NCBI RefSeq assembly: GCF_964188315.1 | Contig: NC_135667.1 | Span: 18,972,001 to 19,036,000, forward strand | Source of the DNA: Podarcis muralis | Lineage: Eukaryota | Length of the DNA: 64,000 nt | Direction of reading: 5' to 3' | Shown here: positions 1,562 through 53,594 of the stretch, piece by piece | Position numbering within the stretch: position 1 is the stretch's first letter | How the letters are laid out: every line of letters begins with the position of its first letter | Notes under the pieces: generated by a model | What the model saw: only the letters and a program-made list of their open reading frames with translations | Told to the model about the DNA's origin: nothing | Database searches by the model: none | Position numbers and translations under genes: made by a program

Positions 1562-2671
1562 TCAAGCTTCTGGCTTCTGGACTTGAGAAGGTTTCTTGGA
1601 CAGCAGAGGGGAGAGGTCTGCTGGAATCCCAATCCATTCAGGCAAAAAAATTGCTGAGGGCTTGAAGCGCTTGCGGACAGGTGAGTCTGGGAGGGTGTAG
1701 TTGGCCAAGTAGATTGTCTTCCCACCAGCCAGGTAGCCAGCCCAGAGGCCAAAAGTGCCAATTGTCATTATTGTGTGGTTGCAATGAGCAAGGAGAGCAA
1801 AATCCCTCCCTGGAGAGGACTCGCGCCCATCCCCAGAAAAATAAACATCCCCCCTGGAGGCATTGATGTTTTCCTTGCACCACTCCATCCCATTGCTGGT
1901 CACCACAAAGATGGGATTGGGGTACTTCTCTCTGAAATAGTTCATGGCTTTCTCCAAATATCCTCTGTCAGCCACCACACCTTTCCAGCTGGGCATCACA
2001 TGGACATAATCCCCTCTGCGGACATGCACACCAACATATGTCACCTCCTGGCGCTGCCCCCGTAGCTCCTGAAGATATTGATTGGCTTCTTCCTTGATGT
2101 GGTCATGGAAGGAGAACTGCTGAAGTATCTCTTGGCGGATATGCTGAAAAAAGGTGTAAGACCATGGGTAGCCCGTCAGCCGGACGTACTTGCCTTTGAT
2201 GTGTTTATAACTCTCTGACATCCAATTATGCAGATGGAAGTTCTTCCAGCGGATCTTTTTAGCCACTTCAGCATGGAGCACTGGTAAAGTGATTCGGAAC
2301 ATTGGTGACAGGTACTTGTGCATGGCGGGATAAATATAAGCTTGATGTCCATTCATCTTGGCTAAGGTATAGAGGGTGGCATATTGCCCCATCTGGTTCC
2401 CAAAACGGCCAGCAGAGTTCACTGTCCATATGCCACTATCTATGATCTTAGAGGATGACCTGGAAGAATTACAGGTGGTGTTGGTGGTAATGAGGGAAGC
2501 AGGTTGTCCCCTCCCTGGGAAATTGGATGCATTCTTGACGCTGATCCTCCACTGCTGATATGGCATCTTGTCATATAGGTGCAAGAATGCAGAGAGGGAC
2601 AGGAGACTGAAAAAGTAGAGGAAGAATAAGAGGGCAGGTTGGCTGAAGGAACATCTTTGTGGGAGATCCAT
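1562..2671 (-). CDS. Galactoside alpha-1,2-fucosyltransferase (GT11, FUT1/FUT2-like), copy A; intact single coding exon, 369 aa
   Basis: Type II N-terminal TM ([14 protein letters not shown]), Ser/Thr stem, [28 protein letters not shown] and [13 protein letters not shown] motifs. Pyrimidine-rich splice acceptor (cctttag at 2691-2692) 19 nt upstream of the ATG. FUT1 versus FUT2 orthology is unresolved, so no symbol is given. Confidence 0.95.
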
Positions 2672-5427: not shown

Positions 5428-8400
5428 GGTGTTGTGGTCTAAACCACTGAGCCTCTTGGGCTTGATGATCAGAAGGTCAGCGGTTCGAATCTGCACGACG
5501 GGGTCAACTCCCATTACTCTTTCCCAGCTCCTGCCAACCTAGCAGTTTGAAAGCACACCAGTGCAAGTCATCTCATCTGTCCTCCCAGTTGAACGACGTG
5601 GCCCAGGGAGAGAGGAAAAAATAGTGGAAGTGAACAGCTGGCTTCGCAAATGGTGTAAACTGGAACGTTTTGGATTCTTAGATCACGGACTGCAGTTTCT
5701 TGAAGATGGACTTCTGGCAAGCGATGGGCTGCACCTCACAACGGTTGGGAGGAATGTTTTTGCCAAAAATCTCAGAAACCTCATCAGGAGGGCTTTAAAC
5801 TGGCTAATATGGGGGAGGGAGACAGTGCTCCTGAAGTTAGGAGTCTATCAATTGATGAAGATGATCATCCAAATGTCATAGACCAAATGGAGCAAACAGC
5901 ACGCAGACCTAGTGGTGGGAGGAAAAAATCCCTAAATAAGAGACACGGGGGAATGATTAATGGACTTCAATGTCTGTACACTAATGCGCAAAGCATGGGA
6001 AATAAACAAGATGAGCTTGAGCTCTTGGTACAGCAAACTAAATATGACATAATAGGCATCACTGAAACCTGGTGGGATAAGTCCCACGATTGGAATGTAA
6101 TAATGGAGGGATACAATCTATTTCAGAGAAACAGACCAGACAAGAAAGGTGGAGGAGTGGCGTTATATGTCAGGGATGTGTATACCTGTGAAGAGATCCA
6201 AGATTTAGAACCTCAAAGCCAAAGTGAGAGCATTTGGGTCAAAATTAAGGGAGCGAAGAATAACAGAGACCTCATTGTGGGAGTTTACTATAGATCCCCA
6301 AGCCAAACAGAGGACATAGATGATGCCTTCCTGGAACAGATGGCCAAGCATGCAAAAGGAAGGGAGATAGTAGTAATGGGGGACTTCAATTACCCGGATA
6401 TTTGTTGGATGTCAAACTCAGCCAAGAGCATAAGTTCAAACAGATTCCTCACTGGCCTTGCAGACAACTTCATTGTCCAGAAAGTGGGAGAAGCAACAAG
6501 AGGAACAGCCATTTTAGATCTGGTCCTAACCAATGTTGATGACCTGGTTAGTGGGGTAGAAGTGGAAGGATCATTAGGCGCGAGTGATCATGCTCTTCTG
6601 AAGTTTACTATACAGCGGAAAGGAGCAGCCAAGCATACTAGGACTCAATTTCTTGACTTTAAGAAAGCCTACTTCATAAAACTTAGGGAAGTGCTGGGTG
6701 AGATCCCATGGACAGTAATACTAAAAGGAAAGGGAGTCCATGATGGCTGGGAGTTTGTTAAGAGGGAGATAGTAAAAGCACAACTTCAGGCAATACCAAT
6801 GAGACGGAAACATGGAAGGTGCCTAAAGAAGCCAGGGTGGCTATCTAAAGAACTTTTAACTGAGTTAAGATTAAAAAAGGATGTGTACAAAAAATGGAAA
6901 AGGGGGGAAACCACCAAAGAGGAATTCAAACAAATAGCCAGCACATGTAGATACAAAGTCAGAAAAGCTAAAGCACAGAATGAACTCAGGCTTGCTAGAG
7001 AGGTTAAAAGCAACAAAAAAGGCTTTTATGGGTATGTCCGTAGCAAAAGGAAGAACAAAGAAACAGTGGGGTCACTCAGAGGAGAAGATGGTGAAATGCA
7101 AACAGGGGACACAGAAAGGGCTGAACTCCTCAATGCCTTCTTTGCCTCAGTCTTCTCCGATAAAGAAAACAATGCCCGACCTGAAGAATTTGGAGCAAAT
7201 GATTCAGCAGAGGAAACACAGCCCAGAATAACTAAGGAGATAGTACAAGAATACTTGGCTAGTTTAGATGTATTCAAGTCTCCAAGGCCAGATGAACTGC
7301 ATCCAAGAGTATTAAAAGAACTGGCAGGTGTGATCTCAGAACCACTGGCAGTCATCTTTGAGAATTCCTGGAGAACAGGCGAAGTCCCGGCAGACTGAAG
7401 GAGGGCAAATGTTGTCCCTATTTTCAAAAAGGGGAAAAGAGAGGACCCAAATAATTATCGCCCAGTCAGTCTGACATCAATACCAGGGAAGATTCTGGAG
7501 CAGATCATTAAGCAAACAGTCTGTGAGCACCTAGAAAGGAATGCTGTGATCACCAATAGTCAGCATGGATTTCTGAAAAATAAGTCATGTCAGACTAACC
7601 AGATCTCGTTTTTTGACAGAATTACAAGGCTGGTAGATGAAGGGAACGCAGTGGATGTAGCCTACCTTGATTTCAGCAAGGCATTCGACAAGGTGCCCCA
7701 TGATATTCTTGTAAAGAAGCTGGTAAAATGCGGTCTTGACTATGCTACCACTCAGTGGATTTGTAACTGGCTGACTGACCGAACCCAAAGGGTGCTCATC
7801 AATGGTTCCTCTTCATCCTGGAGAAGAGTGACTAGTGGGGTGCCACAGGGTTCTGTCTTGGGCCCGGTCTTATTCAACATCTTTATCAACGACTTGGATG
7901 ATGGACTCAAGGGCATCCTGATCAAATTTGCAGATGACACCAAACTGGGAGGGGTGGCTAACACCCCAGAGGACAGGATCACACTTCAAAACGACCTTGA
8001 CAGATTAGAGAACTGGGCCAAAACAAACAAGATGAACTTTAACAGGGAGAAATGTAAAGTATTGCACTTGGGCAAAAAAAATGAGAGGCACAAATACAAG
8101 ATGGGTGACACCTGGCTTGAGAGCAGTACATGTGAAAAGGATCTAGGAGTCTTGGTTGACCACAAACTTGACATGAGCCAACAGTGTGACGCGGCAGCTA
8201 AAAAGGCCAATGCAATTCTGGGCTGCATCAATAGGAGTATAGCATCTAGATCAAGGGAAGTAATAGTGCAACTGTATTCTGCTCTGGTCAGACCTCACCT
8301 GGAGTACTGTGTCCAGTTCTGGGCACCACAGTTCAAGAAGGACACTGACAAACTGGAACGTGTCCAGAGGAGGGCAACCAAAATGGTCAAAGGCCTGGAA

Positions 8401-9041
8401 ACGATGCCTTATGAGGAACGGCTAAGGGAGCTGGGCATGTTTAGCCTGGAGAAGAGGAGGTTAAGGGGTGATATGATAGCCATGTTCAAATATATAAAAG
8501 GATGTCATATAGAGGAGGGAGAAAGGTTGTTTTCTGCTGTTCCAGAGAAGCGGATACGGAGCAATGGATCCAAACTACAAAAAAGAAGATTCCACCTAAA
8601 CATTAGGAAGAACTTCCTGACAGTAAGAGCTGTTCGACAGTGGAATTTGCTGCCAAGGAGTGTGGTGGAGTCTCCTTCTTTGGAGGTCTTTAAGCGGAGG
8701 CTTGACAACCATATGTCGGGAGTGCTCTGATGGTGTTTCCTGCTTGGCAGGGGGTTGGACTCGATGGCCCTTGTTGTCTATTCCAACTCTATGATTCTAT
8801 GATTCTATTCTAAGTAGATAAATGGGTACTGCTGTGGCAGGTAGGTAAATGGTGTTTCCGTGCACTCTGGTTTCCATCACTGTGTCCCGTTGCGCCAAAA
8901 GCGGTTTAGTCATTCTGGCCACATGACCCGGAAAGCTCTCTGTGGACAAACACCGTCTCCCTTGGCCTGAAAGTGAGATGAGTTCCGGAACCCCATAGTC
9001 ACCTTTGACTGGACTTAATCCAGGGTTCGTTTACCTTTACC
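5428..9041 (+). mobile_element. Sauria-type SINE split by the CR1 insertion (5428-5568 and 8812-9041)
   Basis: The SINE core ...gtgcaagt/agataaat... is interrupted exactly by the CR1 and resumes at aagtagataaat. Confidence 0.85.
5569..8810 (+). mobile_element. CR1 LINE, 5'-truncated in ORF1 (esterase-like), near-intact ORF2
   Basis: ORF1 remnant (DGLHL). ORF2 endonuclease (YTNAQS, GITETW, MGDFN) and RT (KFADDTKL) lie in one frame over 5809-8730, broken by a single TGA at 7396-7398. (ATTCTATG)n tail. Confidence 0.95.
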
Positions 9042-14900: not shown

Positions 14901-17900
14901 CTCTGTTTTGATTCATATTTACTCCCTTAAATCAAATATAAAAAACATTACTGCTTTTCCCCTAGCCTCTCTTCCACTTTTCCAAGTCACCCCTTCAATC
15001 TGCCTGAATTCTCAAAGCAAAAAGCCTGCCTTGCAGGAAGAAGGACTATAATTAGCCTTATGGCTTGTCCCTTTATCTTATCCACTGTCCTGCTTTCAAA
15101 ATGATCATGCAGAAGAGAACTACATCTTGTCTCATGTGCTACCTCACTCTCTGGAATTTGCTTTCCTCAGGCATGACATTAGATTCAGATGCTGAAGACT
15201 CAAGTCAAGTGGAAATCAGGCTGGTGAATGGTTCAAATCACTGCAGGGGAAGAGTTGAATTGCTGCATAATGGCCAGTGGGGCACAGTATGCGGTCACTA
15301 CTGGGACCTTGAGGATGCCAGAGTTGTATGCCGGCAGTTGGGCTGCGGAGATGCAGGATCAGCCCTACAGAATGCAGAATTTGGAAGAGGCACTGGCCCC
15401 ATATGGCTGGATGATGTCAGATGCACAGGGACAGAATCAAATCTCTATCAATGCCCCAAAATGCTATGGGGAGAACATGACTGCAGACATGAGCAGGATG
15501 CAGGTGTTGTGTGTTCAGGTGAGTTCATAAACTATGAATTGATCCTACATGTTGGTTTTCACATTATCAGGATTTATTTCAAATATTTACAGCCTGCTCT
15601 TCATGGCTAAGAAGGCATCTCAAAGCAGATTACAATTCTGAAAAACGAAAGGAAAAACCCAACATTAGTAATAATAAAGCATAATAATAGGGAAAGTGAG
15701 ACCCTAGAATACTTTAAAAGATAAAAAAACCCATAACAAGTCAAAACAGAAGAAAAATTCCATGTGTATGTGTACATATGTCAGGAAATCATCCAATCGT
15801 CTTGAAACAAGGTAACAGATGTTTATTTTATTATTTTATTTTATTATTTCTTTAAAATATATTTTCACACATACTGATTCCAAAATGGTGCTTATTCCAA
15901 AATAAACATGCTTATGGGCAGAAAAGGTAAACTTTGGCCTCCACCAGACAGTCCCTGGGTTTTTCAGGTTGGATTCAACCACATACTGGCAAATTTAGGC
16001 TGTGAAATTAAATCTGAGTGGGAGAGGTTGTGCCACCCCCACCCCCCGCCAAAGGATCAGACTTTTTGCCATGAGGAGAATAATGGAAGAATGCACTGGG
16101 TAGTTTGAGATGTCATCCAGCTTTCCCTCAAACCAATCAGCATCACTGCTCAATAAACAAGTCCGTCAACCCAATCAGGGTTGGAAAACTGCCATTTGCT
16201 TGTTTTGTTCTTCTTGCATATCAGGAATGTAGAAGCAGATGTAAAGCATGGAATAGCAGGGGCGGGGTGGGTGAGTGGAGAGAAACACTGTGTGATTCAT
16301 AACTGATTGCAGAAGGGTTGGCAGATGTATGTCCATGGTCTGAAATTACCAAGCTTCACCAGTGATAAATATGGTTCTTTGGCATATGAAAGACCTTTAA
16401 ACAGTTTGACTTCTTTTTCTCCCACTCAGTCCTGCAGGTACATTGGCATGGAGGAATGGCTCCACCAACAGACTTCAGCCAGGATAGCTCATTGTAACCT
16501 CCACAGTCAGAGGCAGGATACTGGGCATTTAAGACAAAGAATATAGGATGGTCACCACTGCTATGTGGGGCTTGTGAGCAGCTAATGGCATCTAGAGGCT
16601 GTGGGTGGTCTTATCTGGCTGATCTTACCCAGCAAGCTAGTAGTTATGCCCTTTTAAGCTATCCTGATGCTACTTTCAACATAATTGCACAAAGGACAAC
16701 TTACCACTCCTCTTACCCACTATCCTGAATTTGCTTCACCCAGGTCTGAAGGATTCAACAGAGATTGCAGGTTTAGGCCCCTTGGAAATCAGGCTGGTGG
16801 AAGGTCAAAGTCGCTGCAGTGGAAAGGTTGAAATTTTCCTTAATGGTCAATGGAACATTGTTTGTGACGATGGCATGAATATTGAGAAAGCCAGAGCTAT
16901 ATGCCAACAGCTAGACTGTGGAGATGTAATCCTGTCTACAAAGGAGGAACGATGGAGAAAAAGAACTGACTTTATCACACTAAGAGACAGCATTTGCGCA
17001 GGAACAGAATCAGCCATCCATCAGTGCCAAGGAAGGCTTTCAAAAATCTTAAACCCGTGTCAATATGCTGTTCTTGTGTGTTCAGGTAAGTTCATAAACT
17101 AAGGCTTGATTTGCACTTTCCCAGTCCCTGAAGGCAGCCAGTGCCAATGCTTTGCCAGACCTGTTCCTATTCTCACAACACAGACCATAATTGTTGTCAA
17201 AAATCATACAAAATCACATGATTTGGAGACATATAGAGGGGGAAGAGACTGAGGGCACAGAATTGTCCTTTATGGCAGGGCCGCCATCTTGCCCTCAGGA
17301 TCATGGGTGCCCACCACCGCAACATGCCTGCATCTTGTGTGTGTAATGTCACATGTTAGACTCTCAATGTTTCATTGCGTTTTTGGAGAGCTGCTCCTCC
17401 AAAAAAGTGATGCAAGGTTGTGCATGTGTGTGATGACACACATCTGTGTCTTCTGGCGGATCCTCTTCCTCCTCTCTGCCACCAGCAAGGCACCCTTTTT
17501 GTGGGGTGGGGCTCAGATGCCTCCGCGTCCGAGGCCACCTCCCCTCCTGGAAAAGGGTGACTCACTGACTGGCTGCGGAGGGCAGAGCTGAAAGACTTGT
17601 CTCGGAGGTGTCGCTGCAGAGGCTGGATGGCTGCCCCTCTCCGGCTTTGCTCATTGACTTTGTGGGTGCCCAGCCTCCCACCCCAACCCATCCCTGGAGT
17701 TGGCACCTATATGGCATTTTAGGGGAAACAGGGAGCCAGCAAGACTGCAGGCAAAACTCCCAAAGGGGAAAGTTCTCGTGGAATACGGTTGAAGAGAGAT
17801 CTGACAAATAATGAAGCTAGAGATCTAAGAGGGAAGAACCACCATGAATTGCCATTCTTGAATGAAGCACTTGCAGAAAACATTTCTTGGCCTTCTGTAA

Positions 17901-20900
17901 CCTGCTGGGGCAAGACTACAGCTATCCAACCTGTAACTAAACATACTATGATTGTTGTTGTTGTTGTTTAGTCGTTTAGTCGTGTCCAACTCTTCATGAC
18001 CCCATGGACCAGAGCACGCCAGGCACTCCTGTCTTCCACTGCCTCCCGCAGTTTGGTCAAACTCATGCTGGTAGCTTTGAGAACACTATCCAATCATCTT
18101 GTCTTCTGTCGTCCCCTTCTCCTCATGCCCTCCATCTTTCCCAACATCAGGGTCTTTTCCAGGGAGTCTTCTCTTCTCATGAGGTGGCCAAAGTATTGGA
18201 GCCTCAGCTTCAGGATCTGTCCTTCCAGTGAGCACTCAAGGCTGATTTCCTTCAGAATGGATAGGTTTGATCTTCTTGCAGTCCATGGGACTCTCAAGAG
18301 TCTCCTCCAGCACCATAATTCAAAAGCATCAATTCTTCAGCGATCAGCCTTCTTGATGGTCCAGCTCTCACTTCCATACATCACTACCGGGAAAACCATG
18401 GCTTTAACTATACGGACCTTTGTTGGCAAGGTGATGTCTCTACTTTTTAAGATGCTGTCTAGGTTTGCCATCGCCTTTCTCCCAAGGAGCAGGCATCTTT
18501 TAATTTCGTGACTGCTGTCACCATCTGCAGTGATCATGGAGCCCAAGAAAGTAAAATCTCTCACTGCCTCCATTTCTTCCCCTTCTATTTGCCAGGAGGT
18601 GATGGGCCCAATGGCCATGATCTTCATTTTTTTGATGTTGAGCTTCAGACCATATTTTGCCCTCTCCTCTTTCACCCTCATTAAAGGGTTCTTTAATTCC
18701 TCTTCACTTTCTGCCATCAAGGTTGTGTCATCTGCATATCTGAGGTTGTTGATATTTCTTCTGGCGATCTTAATTCTGGCTTGGGATTCATCCAGCCCAG
18801 CCTTTCGCATGATGAATTCTGCATATAAGTTAAATAAGCAGGGAGACAATATACAGCCTTGTCGTACTCCTTTCCCAATATTGAACCAATCAGTTGTTCC
18901 ATATCCAGTTCTAACTGTAGCTTCTTGTCCCACGTAGAGATTTCTCAGGAGACAGATGAGGTGATCAGGCACTCCCATTTCTTTAAGACCTTGCCATAGT
19001 TTGCTGTGGTCGACACAGTCAAAGGCTTTTGCATAGTCAATGAAGCAGAGTAGATGCCTTTCTGGAACTCTCTAGCTTTTTCCATAATCCAGTGCATGTT
19101 TGCAATTTGGTCTCTGGTTCTTCTGCCCCTTCGAAATCCAGCTTGCACTTCTGGGAGTTCTCGGTCCACATACTGCTTAAGCCTGCCTTGTAGAATTTTA
19201 AGCATAACCTTGCTAGCGTGTGAAATGGGTGTAATTGTGCGGTAGTTGGAGCATTATTTGGCACTGCCCTTCTTTGGGATTGGGATGTAGACTGATCTTC
19301 TCCAATCCTCTGGCCACTGCTGAGTTTTCCAAATTTGCTGGCATATTGAGTGTAGCACCTTAACAGCATCATCTTTTAAAATTTTAAATAGTTCAGCTGG
19401 AATATCATCACTTCCACTGGCCTTGTTATTAGGAGTGCTTTCTAAGGCCCATTTGACTTCACTCTCCAGGATGTCTGGCTCAAGGTCAGCAACCACACTT
19501 CCTGGTGTATACGAGACATCCATTTCTTTCTGGTATAGTTCCTCTGTGTATTCTTGCCACCTCTTCTTGATGTCTTCTGCTTCTGTTACGTCCTTTCCAC
19601 TTTTGTCTTTTATTGTGGTAATCTTTGTACAAAATGTTCCTTTCATATCTCCAATTTTCTTGAACAGATCTCTGGTTTTTCCCATTCTATTGTTTTCCTC
19701 TATTTCCTTGCATTGCTCGTTTAAGAAGGCCTTCTTGTCTCTCCTTGCTATTTTTTGGAAATCTGCATTCAGTTTCCTGTATCTTTCACTATCTCCTTCG
19801 CATTTCACTTGCCTTCTCTCCCCCGCTATTTGCTATTTGTAAGGCCTCGTTGGACAGCCACTTTGCTTTCTTGCATTTCCTTTTCATTGGGATGGTTTTA
19901 GTTGCTGCCTACTGTATAATGTTACGAGCCTCCATCCATAGTTCTTCAGGCACTCTGTCCACCAAATCTAAATCCTTAAACCTGTTCCTCACTTCCACTG
20001 TGTACTCATAAGGGATTTGACTTAGATTGTATCTTACCAGCCCAGTGGTTTTTCCTACTTTCTTCAGTTTAAGCTTGAATTTTGCTATAAGAAGCTGATG
20101 ATCTGAGCCACAGTCAGCTCCAGGTCTTGTTTTTGCTGACTGTATAGAGCTTCTCCATCTTTGGCTGCAGAGAATATAATCTGATTTCGATGCTGCCCAT
20201 CTGGTGATGTCCATGTGTAGAGTCGTCTCTTGTGTTGTTGGAAAAGAGTGTTTGTGATGACCAGCTTGTTCTCTTGGCAGAACTCTATTAGCCTTTGCCC
20301 TGCTTTGTTTTGAACTCCAAGGCCAAACTTGCCAGTTGTTCCTTTTATCTCTTGACTCCCTACTTTAGCATTCCAATCCCCTATAGTGAACAGAACATCC
20401 TTCTTTGGTGTCATTTCTATAAGGAGTTGTAAGTCTTCATAGAATTGGTCAATTTCAGTTTCTTCAGCACCAGTGGTTGGTGCATAAACTTGGATTACTG
20501 TGTTGTTAAAAGGTCTGCCTTGGATTCGTATCGAGATCATTCTATCATTTTTGAGATTGCATCCCAGTACAGCTTTTGCCACTCTTTTGTTGACTATAAG
20601 GGCCACTCCATTTCTTTTACGGGATTCTTGCCCACAGTAGTAGATATGATGGTCATTCCAAACTGAATTCGCCCATTCCCATCCATTTTAGTTCACTGAT
20701 GCCCAGGATGTCAATATTTATTCTTGCCATCTCATTTTTGACCACATCCAACTTACCCAAGTTCATGGTTTTTACATTCCAGGTTCCTATGCAATATTTT
20801 TCTTTACAGCATTGGACTTTCCTTTCATTTCCATGCATATCCGCAACTGAGCGTCCTTTCGGCTTTGGCCCAGCCGCTTCATCAGCTCTGAATCTATTTG

Positions 20901-23900
20901 TACTTGTCCTCCGCTCTTCCTCAGTAGCATGTTGGACGCCTTCCGACCTGGGGGGCTCATCTTCCAGCGTCATAACTTTTATATGCCTGTTGTCTTTGTC
21001 CATGGAGTTTGCTTGGCAGGGATGCTGGAGTGGCTTGCCGGTTCCTGCTCCAGGTGGATCACGTTTGGTCAAAACTCTCCACTATGACCTGTCCATCTTG
21101 GGTGGCCCTGCACGGCATAGCTCATAGCTGCTCTGAGTTATTCAAGCCCCTTCGCCACGGCAAGGCAGTGATCCATGAAGGGGACACTATGATTACTTAT
21201 ATACTAAGTGATGTAGTGATGAAAGGTGTGGGTTGTTGTTGTTTTTAGTTTTTATCTATTGGTCTGATGTGAGTGGTGTATATAGCAAAAGGCTATATTT
21301 TTAAGTTTGCTATGGATATATTTCTATGTCATGTTTTCTGCTTAAAAGCCTTCTAAACAGCTCACAAAACAGTATTTTTAAAAATTCCACTAAAGAGGAT
21401 GGGATGGGCTCCCAGCTTCAAGCACTGACTGATTGGTCTGATCCAGCAACATGGTGGTCACTCCCCTTTTTCTCACCCACTTTTTATACCCTGTTGCTAC
21501 TTTCAGAATGGTTATACATAGGATGAATTTCTGTAATCCCATTTCCTCACCCACTCTCTGGCATTTGCTTGACCCAGGTGTAGCTTCAAACTCAGATGCT
21601 GCAAACTCATCCCAAGTGGAAATCAGGCTGGTGGGAGGCTCAAGTCGCTGCAGTGGAAGGGTTGAAGTGCTCCTTCATGGCCAGTGGGGCACTGTATGTG
21701 GTCACGGCTGGGACATGGAGGATGCCAGAGTTGTATGCCGGCAGTTGGGCTGCGGAGACGCAAGATCAGCCCTACGGAATGCAGAATTTGGAAGAGGCAC
21801 TGGCCCCATATGGCTGGATGATCTCCGATGCACAGGGACAGAATCAACTCTCGGTCAATGCCCAGCAAGGTCTTGGGGGGCACTGAACTGCAGTGATCTA
21901 AATGCTGCTGTGGTTGTATGCTCAAGTAAGTTCATTATCTGCATTACTCTCGAATAAGAAGCCTTGGGAAGAAGTAATTCCTATCATGAAAAAAGTGCAG
22001 GTTCTTGCAGCACTGTTGTCATGAACTGACTCATACCCACCAACTGCCCCAAGCGTAACTGGTGTGGTGGCACTGGGCACAGAGCTTCTGGGGCTGTGCA
22101 GCAGGTACCATCGCTATTACGTCCAATAGAAGGCGAGAAGTTGGGGAGGCAGACTTCGGCCTCACAGGGTGCACTGAAATTTGAGGCTCCAGGGTATGCA
22201 GCTGAGCGGGGAAAAGGAGTGGGACTGGCAAGGCAGGGAGTCAGGCTTGTGGCTGGCTGAAGTGAGCCTTGGTGCAAGATGCAGGACGACTGCTGCAGGT
22301 CTCTCACTTCGTATGAGCCCTGGCTCCTCTTGTTGCACTAATTCTCTCTTGGCTGCAATGCACTCCCTAGGAATAAATACCTTTGAACTCAGTGCAACTT
22401 TCTGCTGAGTAAACATGTTACACATTACAGTGTGATGGTCTTCCCTGGCACCAATCTCGGCAAGTTTCCCAACAAGCTCTGTAAGCAAATTTGAAAAGGG
22501 TTGTTGGGTGGCAAGAGAGCTGGAATTGGGCAAAAACCTCTGACATCATTTCTTGCAGACTTGTAGGTGTCCCTCAGCTTGGTTTTTTGGCTCAGCTACA
22601 TCTGCAAATAAAACGTTTTGAATGTGTTGTAAAGTGCAATATACAATTGTGACACTAGATGAGCTATAGCAAATTCAATGCATTTTTCAAAACGTTTGAA
22701 ATGGGAGTCTTAAAGTGGTTAGTGGGAGGTGGGGAGTGGGGAGTGGGGAGGGGACCCTGGATTATATTCCCACATGCTAGGAGTGGAGAATGCTACCCGC
22801 AGTGGGGAAGAAATAAGGTAACGATAACTTCCAGATTATTCTAGGCTTCAGTCACGACCTGTTAAATTTTGCCATGTTCCACCCAATCACCCACTTGACC
22901 CTAAAGAGTCTGCCCTGTTCCCACCTGTCCCCAGGGTCCACCTAGAGGAAGTTGGAACTCTTTATTTTAATTTACAGATTCATAAACTATTCCACAACAA
23001 AAAGTTACTGAAGCAGTGTCTAATAAAATAAGTTAAAACAAAACATTAAAGGTTACAAACCCAGTAAATGGAGACTGTGTGTGGTATTCTACTGCATTTT
23101 ACTCAGAGTAGATCCACTAACATTAAGATGACTGAGTTAGGCCCGTTAATTTCAGTGGGTCAACACTGAGTAAAACTTTATTTATACCACCCTATGAAAC
23201 CATTTCTAAAATTATACAGTTTTTATTCTCTAAAATGACTGGGTCACGTGCATTGTGGAAAGCCATTTAAGTAAAATTTTTGAAAAGGTGCCAAATATCA
23301 AATTGTTAGGTGCTTTTCTGATTTCCGGTGACCCCTTATTCTAGAGGGCTGGAGCTGCAGTATGAAAAGCACAGTCTCACTCTCATCTGACGAGTGCAGT
23401 CGCCAGGCACTCATAGGTAAACTGGTCCCAAGCTGCTACTGGCTAATATATGCTAATGCCCCTTTTTTCATCTGAGAAATGTTGGAGAGTAAGCTGGCTG
23501 GATGCAGCTCCTGACAAGTGTTCCCCTTCCCCTGCAGTTTGTCTTCTGACAAGTCCTTTTTCTCATTGTGGACTGTGGTAAAATTATGCAATTAATTACA
23601 TAAGTTATGCTGCCACTATATTTTCCCACCTCATTCATTTTAGTGCAAAGGAAATACAATGGATTTGGGGAGCAAATGCCACCAACTGCATCTTTTGGGG
23701 TCTGAAAGCAACAACAGAGAATATTGATTGTATTTGCTGGATTTATCTCCATTCTGGACATGGGATGAATCAACAGATATCTGCAATTGCTGCTTCTGTT
23801 TCTATTTTCATTACAACTGACTAAAATCCCTATGTGATCTTCCCCTCCACCTGCATGAATTTTAATATGATAATTTACCTCTACTAGCAGCAAGACATGC

Positions 23901-26900
23901 AGGCATTTCTGTAGGTTCCTTCCCTGGATGTGTTACTATAAGTCTTTTTTGTTCCATCAGAGCTCCGTTTCATAAATGGCTCGAGTAACTGCTCTGGACG
24001 GATTGAGGTGTTTCACAACCAGCTGTGGGGGTCCGTTTGTGGCGCTGGCTGGGATTTACAGGATGCCAACGTTGTTTGTGGAGAAATGGGCTGTGGAAAT
24101 GCCTTAAGAGTGCGAAGTGAAGCTTGGTTTGGCCAAGCATCTGGTCCCATTTGGCTGGAGAGAGTTAATTGTACAGGAGAAGAAACATCCTTCTATGATT
24201 GCCCCAGAGGTCCCTGGGGAGAGCACAACTGCAGCCACAGCCAGGATGCAAGTGTGGAGTGCTCAGGTAAGGTTCTCTCTTAGGAGTCAGTGAATCCTCT
24301 GTAGGGGGAAGTTTGGAAAATCCCAACTATCAAGTTCAAATTATTATTGCAGTATATCCAGTTCTGGGATGTGGATGGCGCTGTGGGTTAAACCACAGTG
24401 CCTAGGACTTGCTGATCAGAAGGTCGGCGGTTCAAATCCCCGTGACGGGATGAGCTCCCGTTGCTCCATCCCTGCTCCTGCCAACCTAGCAGTTTGAAAG
24501 CACGTCAAAGTGCAAGTAGATAAATAGGTAAATGGCGTTTCCGTGCGCTACTCTGGTTCACCAGAAGCGGCTTAGTCATGCTGGCCACATGACCCAAAAG
24601 CTGTACACCGGCTCCCTCAGCCAATAAAGCAAGATGAGCGCCGCAACCCCAGAGTAGGCCACAACTGGACCTAATGGTCAGGGGTCCCTTTACCTTTACC
24701 TTTATATCCAATTCTGCCAAGAAATTGGTGCAAGATACAAGATTTAAATATATGGATATTTAGAAGATGAATACATGCACACGCTTTCACACACTCGTAC
24801 TTGTATAGAGAGTTTGTGCACAAGTGTTAAGGGTAATCTGTGAAGAACCCCATACCCTTGGGCATGTCCTGGGTCTTTAATTTATGTGATGCCTTTTTCT
24901 TCATGGGACCTTCCTTCACGAGGTTGCTTCACACTTTATTGAAATCCCCTGGACAACATGGAGGCTTCATGAAAGTGAATCACCCTTAGACATGTTAGAT
25001 ATCTTCCTTTGCCTCCTTTCTTTTGCCTGGTGTCCCACCTGAAGGAAACATCTTCTGTCACTGAACCATATTACAGATGTTCACATGTTGCATTAAATGA
25101 GTGCACACAATACACAATAGTAGAGCTGTAAAAACCAGCAAGTGTGCACTCTTTCACACAATCACTCACACATGTGTAGAGACAGTTTTACCTGTGATTC
25201 TCTCCTGGGGTTGGGTGAGCTTGCTGTTTTGACTTTGGGGGTGAAGGGGTCCCCCAGGGCTGCAGGGGAGGGTGCCTGGGAAAGAGAGAAAGGGCAGGAG
25301 AGAAACCCAGACCATAAAATGGCTGGTGGGCTGAGAGCATCAATGGCACCTTCTGGAGGCAAAATTCCTGGCTAAGCACCCTGAGTTTATGAATCCTTTC
25401 GTGCATTAATTAGATTTAAGCCTGTTGGTTATATGAGCCTGATTATCGCACAGAAACAACAGATGTGCCTTTCAAAAATTCTAGAACCACCAGAGGCCAG
25501 ATTGGTGAACGGCTCAAGCTTTTGTTCTGGAAGGGTTGAGGTGCTCCACAACCAGCAGTGGAGGACAGTGCGTTCTGTTTCCTGGAATCTGCGTGATGCC
25601 CAAGTAGTGTGCAGGGAAGTTGGCTGTGGACCTGCTTTGTCAGCCGAGAAAGGACCTCACTTCGGAAGAGGACATGGCCCCTTCTTGTGGAAAGATACAT
25701 TCTGTTTTGGGACAGAAGCTGCTCTCAGATACTGTCAAAAAATTGACATGTTCCATAAAGCAATTTTTGAAGACTATTTTGAAGACTATTTTGAAGACTA
25801 TTGGAAAGATGTTGGTGCTGTGTGCTCAGGTAATGGGTGTGAATGCATTAAAGGGTGCCATACTGTGGACATAGAAATTGGGTATAAGTTAAATCAGTCT
25901 GTCTCTTTTGTTGGCAGCATATTGGTATTGGTAGTCATGAGAAGGGAGAAGAGATACAGTCCACAATGCATCTTTCCTTTTTCCCACATCCCTCTCTCCT
26001 TTCGTGCTTATGTCTGATGCAAAATCTAATCTTGTAGCTCTTATACTTTCAAAGGGTGGATCTTTGAAATTTAAAGGGTTTTTTTTTAATGCAGTGGTGG
26101 GGAACAACTGACACACAGGCCATATGCCCTGCAAAGGAGAGTTTCCTTATACAGGCCACATCATAGGTTTTTGCTTGGAGGGAAACCTGCTAATGGAATG
26201 AATAGTTTTTCCTCAAGACTAAATGCTGTGTTTGAAAGATTAGGGGAGGGATTGAGGGCACAAGGAGAAGGGGACGACAGAGGATGAAATGGTTGGACAG
26301 TGTTCTCGAAGCTACCAGCATGAGTCTGACCAAACTGCAGGAGGCAGTGGAAGACAGGAGTGCCTGGCGTGCTCTGGTCCATGGGGTCATGAAGAGTCGG
26401 ACAAGACTAAACAACTAAAAAACAACAACTACACTGTGATTCCTGTGTTGAAAATGACTCCCACCGACTACAATAGGCCTTGAATAAAAGCCTCTCATTT
26501 GGTGTAATAGCAGCCCCCCCCCGCCCCCATTAAGGTTAAATGTGCCACAAAGGGCAATTTTTGGGTTGGGCTGCAGCTGAGGAGTGGAGTCATCCTCCTG
26601 TCCCCAGGAACTACAGCTTGGAGCTTGAGTGACTATAGAAAACCCTCAGCAGAGAAGGTTAAACCAAACGGTTTGTGTGTAACTGAATTGACATATAAGA
26701 AGAACAGGAGGCACTGCTTCTGGAGTTCCTGCTTGTGGGGTTTTATATTCCAGGCCACATATTTCAGGTTTGAGGTCGGGGACCAGGTCTTGTTGCTTTG
26801 CCAGAAGTATGTGAGGGGGAAACAACTTGACTCAGTTTTATATTTCCTTGACATCTGATGGGAAGGCATTCTGCATTTTAAACCCAAGGTACGATTGTAT

Positions 26901-31200: not shown

Positions 31201-34200
31201 GTGTGGAATTTATATGTATGATTCTCCTCTATTGCTGCAGTATCTCCTCACACGCTGGTGTTTGTGCCGAATCAGTCCCAAAGTCATTTCGCTGCTGGCA
31301 GACGCCATCTTCTCCCAGTTCTGATGAAATCAAATCTTGGCCTTTGCTCATTAATTTTCCCAGACTGGTTGCATCAAACATTAGCCTTTGCAGGGGAGAT
31401 TTACCAAATCATACTTGAAATACAGATATAATGACATATTAAGAGCTCGCCTCCCCCTATAACTATTTATAACTCTGCAGCTCGGTCTTATTCCATCATG
31501 GCAGATGTCCAATTTAAAAAGTGCGTCACATCTCAACTTTCTAGGAACCCGTCCAAAGTTTTTTGAAGTCTCTCCAGCGGTTAACGAGATCCTGCTTCTT
31601 TCTAAAATCAGCAATTGGAGAATCTTTTATCTTCTTCCAGGCAATTCAAAAAACAAAAGCTGTAATTATATAATATTGTTATTTCCACACAGTTTATATC
31701 AAAATTCTGGAAATTGGGGTGGGTGGGTGTCAAAATGAATATTTAGCTTAGTACAAGGATATTTTTAAAATGAAAACGATGCCCCTCTAGTGAGAATCAA
31801 CAGACAAATATCTATCATTGTTGAAGAAGTGACCAGTTTCAGGCATGACTTCCAACAAAACAATTCAATAGATTCTGTTTCGATGAGCTCTGATAACTAG
31901 GGGCAATAAAAAGGAAGGATGAGGAATGTGAGAGGTGGAGATATAAATCTGTCTTTTTTCACACCCAACAGAGATCAGATTGGTGGGTGGTTCAAATATT
32001 TGCTCTGGGAGATTTGAGCTGTTCTACAACTGGGATTGGATCCCCCCATGTGAAGACAGTTTGGACTGGAACAGTGTCCAAGTCATGTGCCGGCAACTTG
32101 GCTGTGGACCCTTCCTGTCAGGATCATCATCAGCTGTTGAATATAGACCAAGTTTTCTGCCAGCAAAAAAATTCACCTGTGAGGGAACAGAAGCTTCTCT
32201 CAACTACTGCCAAGGAAGATATGTCTCTAAAATGATGTGCTGGCCTTCCTATGCACGTATTGAATGCTCAGGTAATATTAATTTCCTCGTTTGTTTTTTT
32301 ATTCTGTTTAAAACTCACTTCCTATGAAATGTCTCAAATCATTACAGTAATCAAAACAATGAAAATGTTTATGTATAAAACAATTATAGTATATTCGATT
32401 AATAAAGCAATTCAGTATATAAAAAAATTTCAAATCCAATACAGGATTTAATGTTTTAATGTTGAAAAAAGAAAGACTTTAAATGTTGAAAAAAGAAAGA
32501 CTTTAATAGGCACCAAATAGGCAATAGAGATGGCGCCTGTCTGATACGTCACAGGAGGAAGTTCCAAAGGGTGGGTTCCACCAGGCTGAAGGCTTTGTTC
32601 TTATGGACCTCCTGATCAGATGCTGTCTGCAGGAGACCTTCTCCCAGAGAGTGCAGTGATTGGGTGGGCATGTAAAGGGTGAGGTGATATCGCCTAACAT
32701 GTGCCCTCTTGACCACTTCAGTTGGTGGAATTGGCACTATTACAGGTGCCACATAATACCCATTCTGCATCTGTAAGTACTCAATTGTTTAGTGTGGCAG
32801 TGTCTCCCTGCCTATTGAAATCCAATTGGCGCCTTCACTGTTCTCTTTCCAGTGCCTGTTAAAAACACTTTTGTTCAGACAAACCTACCTAGGTGCTTAG
32901 AAATGCTGGTGGGAATTTTAATCTGTTTGAGTCTCTTAGGTTTTGTAGGTTTTTGATGTGTTTCATTTTTTCCCTGATTTTATACTTTTATCTCTTTGTA
33001 AACCACTTTGAAGTTTTGTACACTATAAATTTTATGAAATGAATGAATGAATGAATGGTCATGGAAATGCAGCTCATTCTAGGTAGGATCTTTTGTTGTT
33101 GTTTAGTTGTTTAGTCGTGTCCGACTCTTCATGACCCCATGGACCAGAGCACACCAGCCACTCCTGTCTTCCACTGCCTCCCGCAGTTTGGTCAAACTCA
33201 TGCTGGTAGCTTTGAGAACACTATCCAACCATCTTGTCTTCTGTCGTCCCCTTCTCCTCATGCCCTCCATCTTTCCCAGCATCAGTGTCTTCTCCAGGGA
33301 GTCTTCTCTTCTCATGAGGTGGCCAAAGTATTGGAGCCTCAGCTTCATGATCTGTCCTTCCAGTGAGCACTCAAGGCTGATTTCCTTCAGAATGGATAGG
33401 TTTGATCTTCTTGCAGTCCATGGGACTCTCAAGAGTCTCCTCCAGCACCATAATTCAAAAGCATCAATTCTTCGGTGATCAGCCTTCTTTATGGTCCAGC
33501 TCTCACTTCCATACATCACTACTGGGAAAAGCATAGCTTTAACTATACGGACCTTTGTTGGCAAGGTGATGTCTCTGCTTTTTAAGAAGCTGTCTAGGTT
33601 TGTCATTGCTTTTCTTCCAAGAAGCAGGCATCTTTTAATTTCATGGCTGCTGTCACCATCTGCAGTGATCATGGAGCCCAAGAAAGTAAAATCTATCACT
33701 GCCTCCATTTCTTCCCCTTCTATTTGCCAGGAGGGGATGGGCCTAGTGGCCATATCTTTGTTAGGTAGGATCTTTACCTGTCTTAGGGACGTGGGTGGCG
33801 CTGTGGGTAAAAGCCTCAGCGCCTAGGGCTTGCCGATCGAAAGGTTGGCTGTTCGAATCCCCGTGGCGGGGTGCGCTCCCGCTGCTCGGTCCCAGCGCCT
33901 GCCAACCTAGCAGTTCGAAAGCACCCCTGGGTGCAAGTAGATAAATAGGGACCGCTTACTGGCGGGAAGGTAAACAGCGTTTCCGTGCACGGCTCTGGCT
34001 CGCCAGAGCAGCGATGTCACGCTGGCCACATGACCCGGAAGTGTCTCCGGACAGCGCTGGCCCCCGGCCTATAGAGTGAGATGGGCGCACAACCCTAGAG
34101 TCTGTCAAGACTGGCCCGTATGGGCAGGGGTACCTTTACCTTTACCTTTACCTTTACCTGTCTTAAATAAACAGGCAAGGCCATAGATAACCAGCAAGAC

Positions 34201-44999: not shown

Positions 45000-45338
45000 C
45001 AGTGCTGGATTTACATATAAGCTAAACAAGCTATAGCTTAGGGCCCCCCTCCCCCCCTCCCCATGAATGAAAAATCATTTTAAGTTAGAGCTTAGTAATT
45101 ATTTCACTATTAATATACTTCTTCTTAATTGTATTTCAGTTCAACAATTACTTTGATAAAATACGTAATTTGTGATGTGCAAATGGCTTTAGATACCTAT
45201 TAGGCCCATAAATTACCATATAGCATATATTCAACAAAAAACAGCGACAATTCATTGTTGACAAAGGACAGCTGGACATATATAGGGCCCCATTACCTTC
45301 AGTAGCTTAGGGCCTCATCAAACCAAAATCCGGTCCTG
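45000..45338. mobile_element. Non-autonomous hAT-type DNA transposon
   Basis: Perfect 8-bp TSD CTCCTGCT at 44992-44999 and 45339-45346. Confidence 0.82.
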
Positions 45339-46460
45339 CTCCTGCTGGTGTCTATGTTTTTCCATCATGTCATCCTGGCCTTCATCCTGTCCAGCAGTAG
45401 TCATGATGCTTTTCAGAAACCAAGTTGCATGGAATACATGAAAGGAGAGAGACAGATAGCTGTACATCACGGTACATCAGCTTCCAGGAATCTGCCCATG
45501 ACTTTGGTTCTGTCACAAATGGTGTCAACCACTGCAGAATTAACATCAAATCTAAATGAAAATTGGAACAATCACAGCTTGGTAAGGACAATAATGCTGT
45601 GAGTCAGGGGCACCATCTGGGGGAGAGGGAGTTGTGGGCCCACCAAAAGCTTCAAGGAGGGTGCTGCGCCCCCTCAGAATTCCACAGCAACTGTGCATCC
45701 ATGCCACTCAGCTGCTCAATGTCATGCACGCTGTGTGGTGTGCTTGCGTCATGCCAGCAAGCCACGTGGCATGGCGAAACATTTTATCCGTGTGTATTAA
45801 ATGCCTTTTCTTTTGCCTGCTGTTTACACACCAGACTTCTAAACAAGGGCTTTCCCTCACCTGATTGTCCCTTTGATTTCTGGAAGTCATGTTCCCTGAG
45901 TCCTCTGTTCTTAATATTCTTGATGACACTGATTGTTTGTCTCATGTTCATATTTAGTACTCTACCTTTTATGAAACCTGCTTGGTATTATTCTATGTGG
46001 CTAAAATGACTTTATTTGGTAAGAATAGATGTTAATATTTTATAATATGCAGTCAACAATGAGCTTACTTCTGTATTTTTCTTTTGCTTTTTTGAGTATT
46101 AAAATTTCTTTCCCAACTGCCCATTCATTTAGGTGCTTTGTTAGTGGTTCACCTAGCTTGTCTGCACAAGTTTCATAATATTCAGTCATCACATAATATT
46201 TAGATCAAGGTGCTCTTGGAGAAAACAGATTTTCTGGAGAAGTAGGCCTTGGAGGTTTAAGGTGAGGCAGGAACCAGATACTCCCTGGTTCTGTACTTCT
46301 AAAATTCAAAATGAGACTCAATCTCATTCACCCAAACAGTGCTCCTAAGGATCCAATTTCCATTTGAGAAGACATCAGAAAATGTATGCTAACATAGTCC
46401 AGGCTAAATAGTCACATCATTAAAAATATGCTCCTTCGTGGGATCAAATTGTATGCTGAT

Positions 46461-47602: not shown

Positions 47603-47723
47603 TCAGGAGTGCTGGTGACCACTCTCACATACACGCTCTGTGGAATCAGTGCCCAGACAAGTCCTTCCAACAGCCGCCCAGAGTGGCTGGGGAAACTTAG
47701 CCAGATGGGCAGGGTATAAATAA

Positions 47724-47771
<48 letters not shown>

Positions 47772-48904
47772 ATTAGACGTGATTCAACAAGACATGGTTT
47801 CTTGGACAGCAGATTGGAAAGGTCCGCTGGAATCCCAATCCATTCAGGCAAAAATGCTGCCCAGGGCTTGAAGACCTTAAGGAAGGGAGAGTCTGGGAGG
47901 GTGTAGTTGGCCAAGTAGACGGTCTCCCCACCAGCCAGGTAGCCGGCCCAGAAGCCAAAAGTGCCAATCGTCATTATTGTGTGGTTGCAATGAGCAAGGA
48001 GAGCAAAATCCCTCTCTGGAGAGGACTCGCGCCCATCCCCAGAAAAATAAACATCCCCCCTGGAGGCATTGATGTTTTTCTTGCACCACTCCATCCCATT
48101 GCTGGTCACCACAAAGATGGGATTGGGGTACTTCTCTCTGAAATAGTTCATGGCTTTCTCCAAATATCCTGTGTCAGCCACCACACCTTTCCAGATCTTG
48201 GGCATCACATGGACATAATCTCCTCTGCGGACATGCACTCCAACATACGTCACCTCCTGGCACTGCCCCCTTAGCTCCTGAAGATATCGATTGGCTTCTT
48301 CCTTGATGTGGTCATGGAAGGAGAACTGCTGAAGTATCTCTTGGCGGATATGGTGATAAAAGGTGTAAGAACATGGGTAGCCCGTCAGCCGGACGTACTT
48401 GCCTTTGATGTGTTTATAACTCTCTGACATCCAATCATGCAGACCAAAGTTCCTCCAGCGGATCTTTTTAGCCACTTCAGCATGGAGCACAGGCAAAGTG
48501 ATCCGGAATATTGGTGAGAGGTACTGGTGCATGGCGGGATAGATGTAGGCTTGATGTCCATTCATCTTGGCTAAGGCATAGAGGGTGGCATATTCCCCCA
48601 TCTGGTTTCCCAAACGGCCATCAGATTTCACTGTCCATATACCACTATCTATTGTCTTAGAAGATGACCTGGAAGAAGTGGTGGTTGTGTTATAGTATGA
48701 CCGAGAAGAAGTGGTGGTGGCCGTTAGGCAAGAGGGAGGTCCCATCCCTGGGAAACTGGGTGCATTCTTGAAGGTGATCCTCCACTGCTGATATGGTATT
48801 TTTTCACACAAGTACCAGAATGTAGAGAGGGACAGGAGGCCAAAGAAGCAGAGGAAGAATAAGAGGGCAGGCTGGCTGAAGGAACATCGTTGTGAGAGAT
48901 CCAT
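47603..48904 (-). CDS. Galactoside alpha-1,2-fucosyltransferase (GT11, FUT2-like), copy B; aberrant read-through C-terminus
   Basis: ATG at 48904 (MDLSQRC) is homologous to the copy A start, with the same acceptor 19 nt upstream (48924-48925). Motifs [29 protein letters not shown] and HVRRGDY are present. After LLSKKP the frame continues through (ATA)n to TGA at 47603. Confidence 0.9.
47671..47770 (+). mobile_element. L2-type LINE 3' tail with (TAT)n inside the read-through C-terminus of FUT copy B
   Basis: gccgcccagagtggctggggaaac..gccagatgggcagggtataaat..(att)n matches tails at 61520-61580 and 62394-62460. Confidence 0.85.
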
Positions 48905-52600: not shown

Positions 52601-53594
52601 ATTACAGTGGTACTGAGAGTAACAGTGATAGCTCGGAGAGCTCAGTTGACACAGTCATTGAGAGGAAATCTCACACAATGGCTAGACCTTCACAGGTGAA
52701 GGATGAACCACTGTTTACTATTGGAACTGGTTCTCCAAAGAGTCCTGAGACTGAACCAGTGAGCAGAGAGGATCAGCACCTCATACGTAGGTCTGAGAGA
52801 GTTACAAAGGATGTACCACCCCAGAGGTATTCAAAAGTGTTTGCTAACTTAGCTGTAGCATGTGTTACTATTGTTGACAACTCAAGACAGGTTGAAGCTG
52901 TGTCTAAGTCAGAGACAAAGACACAACAGAGAGTTGCTAAGCGTAACACTACATTCCCTAGCCAAGGTAATGCAGATGCACTCATTCCTTGGAAGTCAGA
53001 CAACCAGAGAGGTACACTGGGGAAACCAGTGGTGGGTAGTTCCAAGGGCGGAACTGAAACAACAGGGAAGTGTTATATGTATAACAACTGTTTGTTTTCT
53101 TCTCTGGATCACGCTTTGCTCGCAGCGCACTTTGATTCATATGGGGGAGTATGTTACGATATAGAAGCAATGCAGCCGCGAGCTGCTGGTAGCTTGAAAA
53201 CATCACATGATGGAATGTTGGGACTGTTCCGTGGGAAACAGAGGGACAGTCAATTCACAGTGCAGAGGGCACCGGAATTAGCTCAGAGTGTAATATGAGC
53301 TGTACAGGAAGTGTTTGTTCTCTCTCGACTGCTGGAGTTTGAAGAGAGCAGTCATGTTTTTTGTAACGCTGCAAAGACAGAAATAAAGGCATGTAAATAC
53401 GTTTTCTGTCTATCTCTTTCCCCTGCTGGGGGGGGCAGGAAAGAGGGGGGGTGTTCTTCTCACGCTGAGAAGGATCGCCTATTGCAACCTAGCCTGGATC
53501 TTGCCGGGAAAGCAGACAGGGAGGTCAACAGGAGATCAAGCCGGGTGCCTGGGAGAGTTGCCAGTTTCTCCTGATAAAGGCTTGATTCCCGACA
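49601..53594 (+). mobile_element. Ty1/copia-type LTR retrotransposon, non-autonomous (gag-protease-degenerate integrase, no RT/RNase H)
   Basis: LTRs at 49601-50045 and 53152-53594 (TG...CA), 5-bp TSD GGCAG (49596-49600, 53595-53599), PBS-like TGGTAGCA after the 5' LTR, GGGGGAG PPT. ORFs 50611-51498 and 51535-53298 are in one frame separated by a single TGA. Confidence 0.93.

Follow-up and report, generated by a model that had tools for sequence, protein, structure and literature searches.

A FUT2-like gene of Podarcis muralis, in an array with gene conversion, that probably acquired three FUT1-type residues by separate substitutions

Introduction

Many microbes and viruses of the gut and of mucosae attach to alpha-1,2-fucosylated glycans, namely the H antigen and its derivatives, and the split between mammalian FUT1 and FUT2 is a textbook case of paralogs that divided acceptor types between them. 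FUT1 (the H enzyme) prefers type 2 acceptors, and FUT2 ('secretor') type 1 acceptors (PMC12717137). FUT2 is the older of the two genes, and FUT1 arose from it later (Yamamoto et al. 2014, PMC5377540). Within the GT11 family, motif I binds GDP-fucose, and motif IV is without an assigned function; both motifs are used here as defined in PMC8439653.

We examined a window of 64,000 nucleotides of Podarcis muralis (assembly GCF_964188315.1, contig NC_135667.1, positions 18,972,001–19,036,000 of the forward strand). An earlier note on this DNA had described two FUT genes, copy A and copy B, and had proposed that copy A, on a FUT2-like backbone, carries three residues that distinguish mammalian FUT1. 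It offered two explanations: a convergent H enzyme, or gene conversion that homogenised older paralogs except at these sites. The sites are codons 90, 96, and 175, and their states are written in this order; copy A is F/Q/F and copy B is L/E/Y.

Copy A shares Phe90, Gln96, and Phe175 with mammalian FUT1, where they are the majority states. Unlike copy A, however, FUT1 forms a mammal-only clade, and 14 of 17 FUT1-diagnostic residues (defined below) are absent from copy A. Copy A resembles vertebrate FUT2-type proteins of GT11 more broadly: its whole catalytic domain matches the Pfam GT11 profile, the topology is type II, motifs I and IV are present, 13 of the 17 sites are in the FUT2 state, and it falls in the non-mammal FUT2-like part of the tree. 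Copy A departs from these proteins in belonging to a lacertid-only subfamily, in Asp149Asn, Cys170Trp, VRKR for FLKV, and a one-codon deletion after motif I, and in F90, Q96, and F175 themselves. The lizard genes, like the mammalian FUT1/FUT2/SEC1 cluster, are tandem GT11 paralogs, but they represent an independent expansion to at least six copies, interleaved with a receptor gene of the SRCR type; the neighbours listed for the mammalian cluster differ from this one (PMC5377540). An older P. muralis gene model already bears the RefSeq name 'galactoside 2-alpha-L-fucosyltransferase 2-like' (XP_028560405.1).

The FUT genes of the window

When the window, which is free of N runs, was searched by tblastn, two FUT genes only were found, and more lie in the genome just outside it (Table 1). 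Copy A is identical to the first gene of locus L001 (P. muralis OZ076966.1). Both proteins matched the Pfam family Glyco_transf_11 (PF01531), with E values of 9.4e-111 for copy A and 1e-114 for copy B, and residues 73–349 of copy A covered positions 23–297 of the 298 in the profile. Copy A has motif I at residues 216–222 and motif IV, as GRFGNQ, at residues 88–93. The H, R, R, and D of motif I are near-invariant among 115 diverse GT11 proteins.

Table 1. Features of the window. Positions are those of the window, counted from its first letter.
Feature	Position	Strand	Remarks
Copy A (W1), complete single-exon CDS	1562..2671	-	FUT2-like GT11 alpha-1,2-fucosyltransferase, 369 aa; ORF intact
VRKR	1667..1678	-	Codons 332–335; instead of conserved FLKV/FLKI; common to most W1 orthologs
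GT11 motif I, HVRRGDY	2006..2026	-	Codons 216–222; intact
Codons 175–176, TTT CAG, Phe-Gln	2144..2149	-	TAT CAC, Tyr-His, in copy B; codon 175 is 2147–2149
Codon 170, TGG, Trp	2162..2164	-	Replaces conserved Cys of YPCS (TGT in copy B)
Codon 149, AAT, Asn	2225..2227	-	Asp in at least 95% of vertebrate GT11 (LHDWM)
Codon 96, CAA, Gln	2384..2386	-	GAA, Glu, in copy B; from codon alignment
Codon 90, TTT, Phe	2402..2404	-	TTG, Leu, in copy B; within GT11 motif IV (GRxGNQ)
Predicted N-terminal membrane helix	2567..2641	-	Codons 11–35; type II anchor; DSSP helix in AF2 model
Transposable-element-like long ORF	5809-8730	+	
SRCR-domain exons	15065-15610, 21451-21957, 25433-26017	+	Scavenger-receptor-type gene; between copies B and A
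Transposable-element-like long ORF	18337-20606	-	
Transposable-element-like long ORF	33103-33753	-	
Inverted 176-nt stretch	45168-45340		See text
Copy B	47603..48904	-	C-type FUT2-like paralog; L/E/Y
3′ end of copy B	47603-47800		See text
Copy B codon TTG	48611-48613	-	Aligned with codon 90
Copy B codon GAA	48593-48595	-	Aligned with codon 96
Copy B codon TAT	48356-48358	-	Aligned with codon 175
Transposable-element-like long ORF	50611-53298	+	

In the AF2 model of copy A (mean pLDDT 84.5), a membrane helix and a disordered stem precede a GT-B domain; the stem, residues 40–71, is of low confidence (pLDDT <50). The GT-B fold was also evident from Foldseek, where the best matches of the model were AtFUT1, FUT8, POFUT1, and NodZ, with probability 1.00. 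A GT11 structure was not found in the PDB by sequence, either with the single protein or with a profile, and the searches gave chance matches to myrosinase only. On account of its family membership, its intact motifs, and the purifying selection described below, copy A is most likely a working Golgi type II enzyme that would transfer fucose from GDP-fucose to terminal galactose.

It may be noted that the other lacertid copies end in ...QKPEA, whereas the frame of copy B stays open at this point. It continues for about 60 codons, 15 of them consecutive Ile codons that form a microsatellite or repeat tail, and then stops. Much of the space between the genes is occupied by ORFs that resemble transposable elements; judged from ORF translations only, they include a LINE-type endonuclease with reverse transcriptase and a gag-integrase pair.

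The three residues in copy A

A codon alignment of the two genes bore out the readings of the earlier note: a ten-residue motif and TFF in copy A, against the corresponding ten residues and TFY in copy B. Each of the three sites differs by one nucleotide, and all of them fall within positions 2140–2410. The two genes are close paralogs, as had been claimed, with 83% protein identity (dN 0.073, dS 0.194, omega 0.38). The older P. muralis gene model (P0126) is likewise F/Q/F, and an assembly artefact was rejected as the origin of these residues on this ground.

In the AF2 model all three regions have pLDDT >90. F90 stands at the start of the helix formed by residues 90–106 and Q96 lies inside it, while F175 closes a loop just before the helix 176–185. 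A search of the literature for the motif strings found no matching paper, and no report was found that ties residues 90, 96, or 175 to the difference between type 1 and type 2 acceptors.

The lacertid gene array

The earlier reading of the locus as a pair, copy A and copy B, proved too simple: lacertids have a tandem array of at least six FUT2-like genes, in which the subfamily of copy A is a distinct one. Two subfamilies were seen in Podarcis, Lacerta, and Zootoca. C-type genes, including copy B, have YPC and MPKIWKG; W-type genes, including copy A, have YPW and MPS-WKG, the latter one codon shorter. Three of them stand in tandem in P. muralis: copy A is W1, W2 lies 5.5 kb downstream of it, and W3 7.8 kb further. 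W2 and W3, which have flanking sequence in common with copy A, lie a little way beyond the window. As a subfamily, the trio is sister to the C-type copies, B among them.

The SRCR gene that lies between copies A and B was also found upstream of W1 in P. raffonei (L005), P. lilfordi (L003), and Zootoca (L006). Within the window, a stretch of 176 nt is 87% identical, in inverted orientation, to the sequence about 260–430 nt downstream of the stop of copy A. It may be the leftover of another FUT duplication unit; a third FUT coding remnant was not found in the window by tblastn.

Phylogenetic position of copy A

In the GT11 tree, FUT1 was monophyletic (support 100) inside an all-mammal clade (support 100). 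All lacertid FUT genes formed one clade (99), as did all W-type genes (99), and W2 and W3 were nested among the Podarcis W1 genes. Copy A fell in the lacertid clade, with the sauropsid FUT2-like genes, and outside the FUT1 clade. The tree thus rejects copy A as a FUT1 ortholog, and its mammal-only FUT1 clade accords with the later origin of FUT1 given by Yamamoto et al. 2014 (PMC5377540). Since FUT1 is a mammal-only clade and lizards are without FUT1 relatives, the residues of the lizard gene are independent of FUT1, as the earlier note had supposed, and the states that the two have in common are homoplasy.

Comparison with mammalian FUT1 and FUT2

The motifs of human FUT1 and FUT2 had been quoted in the earlier note, and were compared with 39 FUT2/SEC1 clusters and with 80 named mammalian FUT1 clusters, among the latter platypus and two marsupials. 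The set was gathered by a word search seeded with a low-quality bat FUT1 (P0179), which an exhaustive search of representatives had yielded; no FUT1 was among the best 120 matches of an earlier word search. The mammalian sequences are those of non-human species, such as macaque (P0341).

The quoted motifs were right for most clusters. Among the 77 FUT1 clusters scored at all three sites, 51 were F/Q/F, 23 L/Q/F, two F/Q/Y, and one L/Q/Y; among the 39 FUT2/SEC1 clusters, 34 were L/E/Y and five L/Q/Y. The first, ten-residue FUT1 motif was present in 54 of 78 FUT1 clusters and the second, TFF, in 75 of 79. F/Q/F is nevertheless no clean signature of FUT1: the first site is Leu rather than Phe in 24 of 78 FUT1 clusters, and Gln occurs in five of the 39 FUT2/SEC1 clusters.

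A broader comparison was made at sites defined without looking at copy A. A site was taken as FUT1-diagnostic if the FUT1 consensus reached at least 60% and differed from FUT2, and if the FUT2 residue was that of the non-mammal consensus; 17 such sites lie in the catalytic domain. Copy A agreed with FUT1 at three of them and with FUT2 at 13, and matched neither at one. The FUT2-like backbone described earlier was thus upheld, with the FUT2 residue at 13 of the 14 remaining sites. True FUT1 proteins had 12–17 of the 17, apart from three low scorers at 5–8. Of 156 non-mammal sequences, 89 scored 0, 43 scored 1, 15 scored 2, and nine scored 3; a score of 3 was also reached by at least six other non-mammal lineages, for example a cordylid, two caecilian genes, a newt, and a toad.

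Copy A differs from the non-mammal consensus at 32 positions, and its three FUT1-ward matches compare with 0.45 expected (binomial p 0.010), the most extreme value of the 156 non-mammal sequences. With about 150 sequences and post hoc selection this excess is not significant, yet it is not nothing.

The states at the three sites were also surveyed in 114 diverse GT11 proteins. Site 175 was Phe in 90 and Tyr in 15; site 96 was Gln in 40 and Glu in 37; site 90 was Leu in 101 and Phe in three. As Phe175 is the majority state and Gln96 is about as frequent as Glu across GT11, two of the three 'FUT1 residues' are ordinary states of the family, and F90 is the sole rare one. On a tree of 198 tips, the minimum number of changes was 20 for site 96, 11 for site 90, and 3 for site 175; F175 has only about three origins in tetrapods.

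History of the three sites and gene conversion

The polarity of the states was read from the outgroup states and from the counts of changes on the tree. The W1 orthologs were F/Q/F in P. muralis, F/E/F in P. lilfordi, F/Q/Y in P. raffonei and L. agilis, and F/E/Y in Zootoca. F90 was therefore present in every W1 ortholog, both Zootoca copies included, and Leu90 was found in W2, W3, copy B, and Rhineura. Gln96, seen in three of the W1 species, also occurs in the W-type gene of Rhineura (Rhineura W), and Phe175 is confined to P. muralis and P. lilfordi, all others having Tyr. The history of the three sites is stepwise and mosaic, with no single switch. One coordinated change of three residues does not agree with these data, as the states are of different ages and form a mosaic among the orthologs of copy A.

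Traces of gene conversion were directly visible. In the nucleotide alignment, W2 and W3 share AAA85, GAT87, TTG90, and GGA91 with copy B, and it is because of this shared conversion tract that they have Leu at site 90 although nested inside the F90 clade. The W2/W3 tract ACT173-TAT175-CAC176, with a linked synonymous marker, is present in W1 of P. raffonei, whose Tyr-His is accounted for by conversion of that tract. The 5′ third of P. lilfordi W1 grouped with W2 (support 78). Over codons 131–260, paralogs within a species were more alike than orthologs between genera, and this part of the gene is homogenised. Short tracts have thus been exchanged between paralogs of the array. The proposal that gene conversion had homogenised older paralogs was correct as far as the conversion tracts are concerned; it fits the residues themselves poorly, since F175 and Q96 are young and are not old islands.

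In P. lilfordi (L003, 10001–11107), only two W-type genes were observed within the 10-kb flanks. The W2-like 5′ end of W1 in this species would fit a merge of W2 into W1 by unequal crossover or conversion, or an assembly collapse.

Selection on copy A

The ORF of W1 is intact in five species. Omega in the catalytic domain ranged from 0.14 to 0.67 overall, with 0.14–0.41 between W1 orthologs and 0.53–0.67 against recent paralogs. The synonymous excess between W1 orthologs was significant by Fisher's test (p 6e-5 for Lacerta, 4e-4 for Zootoca, and 1e-5 for P. lilfordi). All dN/dS comparisons were below 1, that of A with B included, so the codon-level test suggested by the earlier note gave no sign of omega >1.

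At columns conserved in at least 95% of sequences, copy A departs from the conserved residue in six of 121 (A102T, D149N, C170W, H176Q, F332V, and L333R), against none of 121 for copy B and a reference median of one. These departures make some change of function in copy A plausible. They could also be taken to mean that copy A is redundant and drifting toward loss of function, its odd residues being neutral or mildly damaging; the loss of a conserved Cys, E318K, and the omega values against recent paralogs point in this direction. However, the ORF that is intact in five species, the purifying selection between orthologs, the conservation of VRKR and F90 across genera, and the intact motif I all speak for a maintained gene, and such relaxed constraint appears extremely unlikely.

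Purifying selection means that the derived states are tolerated in a maintained gene, and this is consistent with the idea that the W1 lineage was selected toward a FUT1-like acceptor preference, with L90F, E96Q, and Y175F as the causal changes. All three states are enriched in FUT1, there is the nominal FUT1-ward excess for the divergence of copy A, and F90, rare in GT11 and situated in motif IV, has been stably kept in all W1 orthologs. Against this, the gene has only three of the 17 diagnostic residues and is equalled by at least six other lineages; the three states are of unequal age and are not the same in all orthologs; F90 is missing from 24 of 78 FUT1 clusters, while Q96 and F175 are common in GT11; and no omega exceeds 1, no published role of the residues in acceptor choice was found, and motif IV is unassigned (PMC8439653). 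We consider adaptive convergence very unlikely, and the 'convergent H enzyme' of the earlier note is not supported, in view of the low diagnostic score, the stepwise mosaic gains, the ordinary GT11 states, and the omega values.

Paired loss of Asp149 and Cys170

Two of the six conserved-column departures of copy A, those at codons 149 and 170, go together across tetrapods. The non-mammal cross-table of the two losses was 120 / 2 / 4 / 29, and in independent contrasts six to seven cases went the same way and none the opposite way (p ~0.016). Lacertids, an amphisbaenian (Rhineura), a skink, a gecko, sea turtles, a newt, and frogs all have a second FUT2-like copy that shows the paired loss (proteins P0009, P0016, P0027, P0039, P0078, P0111, P0112, and P0117 among them). 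It is almost never seen in mammals, where the Cys was missing in one of 108. In the subfamily of copy A, the paired loss is more unusual than F/Q/F.

The loops that bear residues 149 and 170 exist only in the vertebrate-like subgroup of GT11. Asp149 was considered as a universal catalytic residue, and this was rejected, the loop being absent from about 75 of 115 diverse GT11 proteins.

The paired loss would be either a coupled change repeated after duplication or the mark of an old paralog masked by conversion. Under the latter reading, an ancient second FUT2-like gene of 'N/W type' has undergone concerted evolution, and conversion has left islands of old divergence. The visible conversion tracts and the co-loss across tetrapod lineages argue for this, as does Rhineura W, which resembles the lacertid W-type genes in lacking Asp149, Cys170, and one codon after motif I and in being altered at F332. 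But the AU test rejected Rhineura W and lacertid W as one clade (p 4e-6), and dS between the W and C genes of Rhineura was 0.26, lower than the 0.40–0.53 between Rhineura and lacertids. Moreover, F175 and Q96 are young, shared SRCR synteny was not found in the Rhineura flanks, and the pattern is equally well explained if the coupled substitutions recurred after each duplication. An old masked paralog thus seems distinctly unlikely as the explanation of copy A.

A wider possibility is that non-mammal tetrapods repeatedly make, or long keep, a second functional class of FUT2-like gene, in which Asp149 and Cys170 are lost in vertebrate-specific loops next to motif IV. The lacertid W1 would then have gone furthest (L90F, Y175F, and VRKR), altering which glycans receive an H-type cap, and the FUT1-like residues would be part of a real shift in the acceptor site. 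On the present comparisons we regard this as unlikely.

Discussion

The reading that we prefer, and hold to be probably correct, is that copy A is W1 of the lacertid W trio, most likely a working enzyme, whose F/Q/F came about by separate substitutions, in an array subject to gene conversion, as homoplasy with FUT1. Three separate single-nucleotide substitutions would have built the combination: first L90F, at the root of the W subfamily, afterwards E96Q, in a patchy manner, and Y175F in no copies other than those of P. muralis and P. lilfordi. In some copies and some species, these states would then have been erased by gene conversion over short tracts between paralogs. The match to FUT1 would reflect homoplasy at sites that toggle easily, with no orthology involved, and nothing in these comparisons shows convergence in function between copy A and FUT1.

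If it were true, an independent re-invention of a FUT1-like enzyme in lizards would be a natural experiment on the residues of acceptor choice, in a family without a solved structure. The evidence gives the case a more modest value, that of an ordinary paralog, specific to its lineage and annotated before, in which a few residues are homoplastic. What is documented here is a lacertid FUT2-like array with active gene conversion, and the recurrent loss of Asp149 and Cys170 is a possible sign of paralogs that differ in function.
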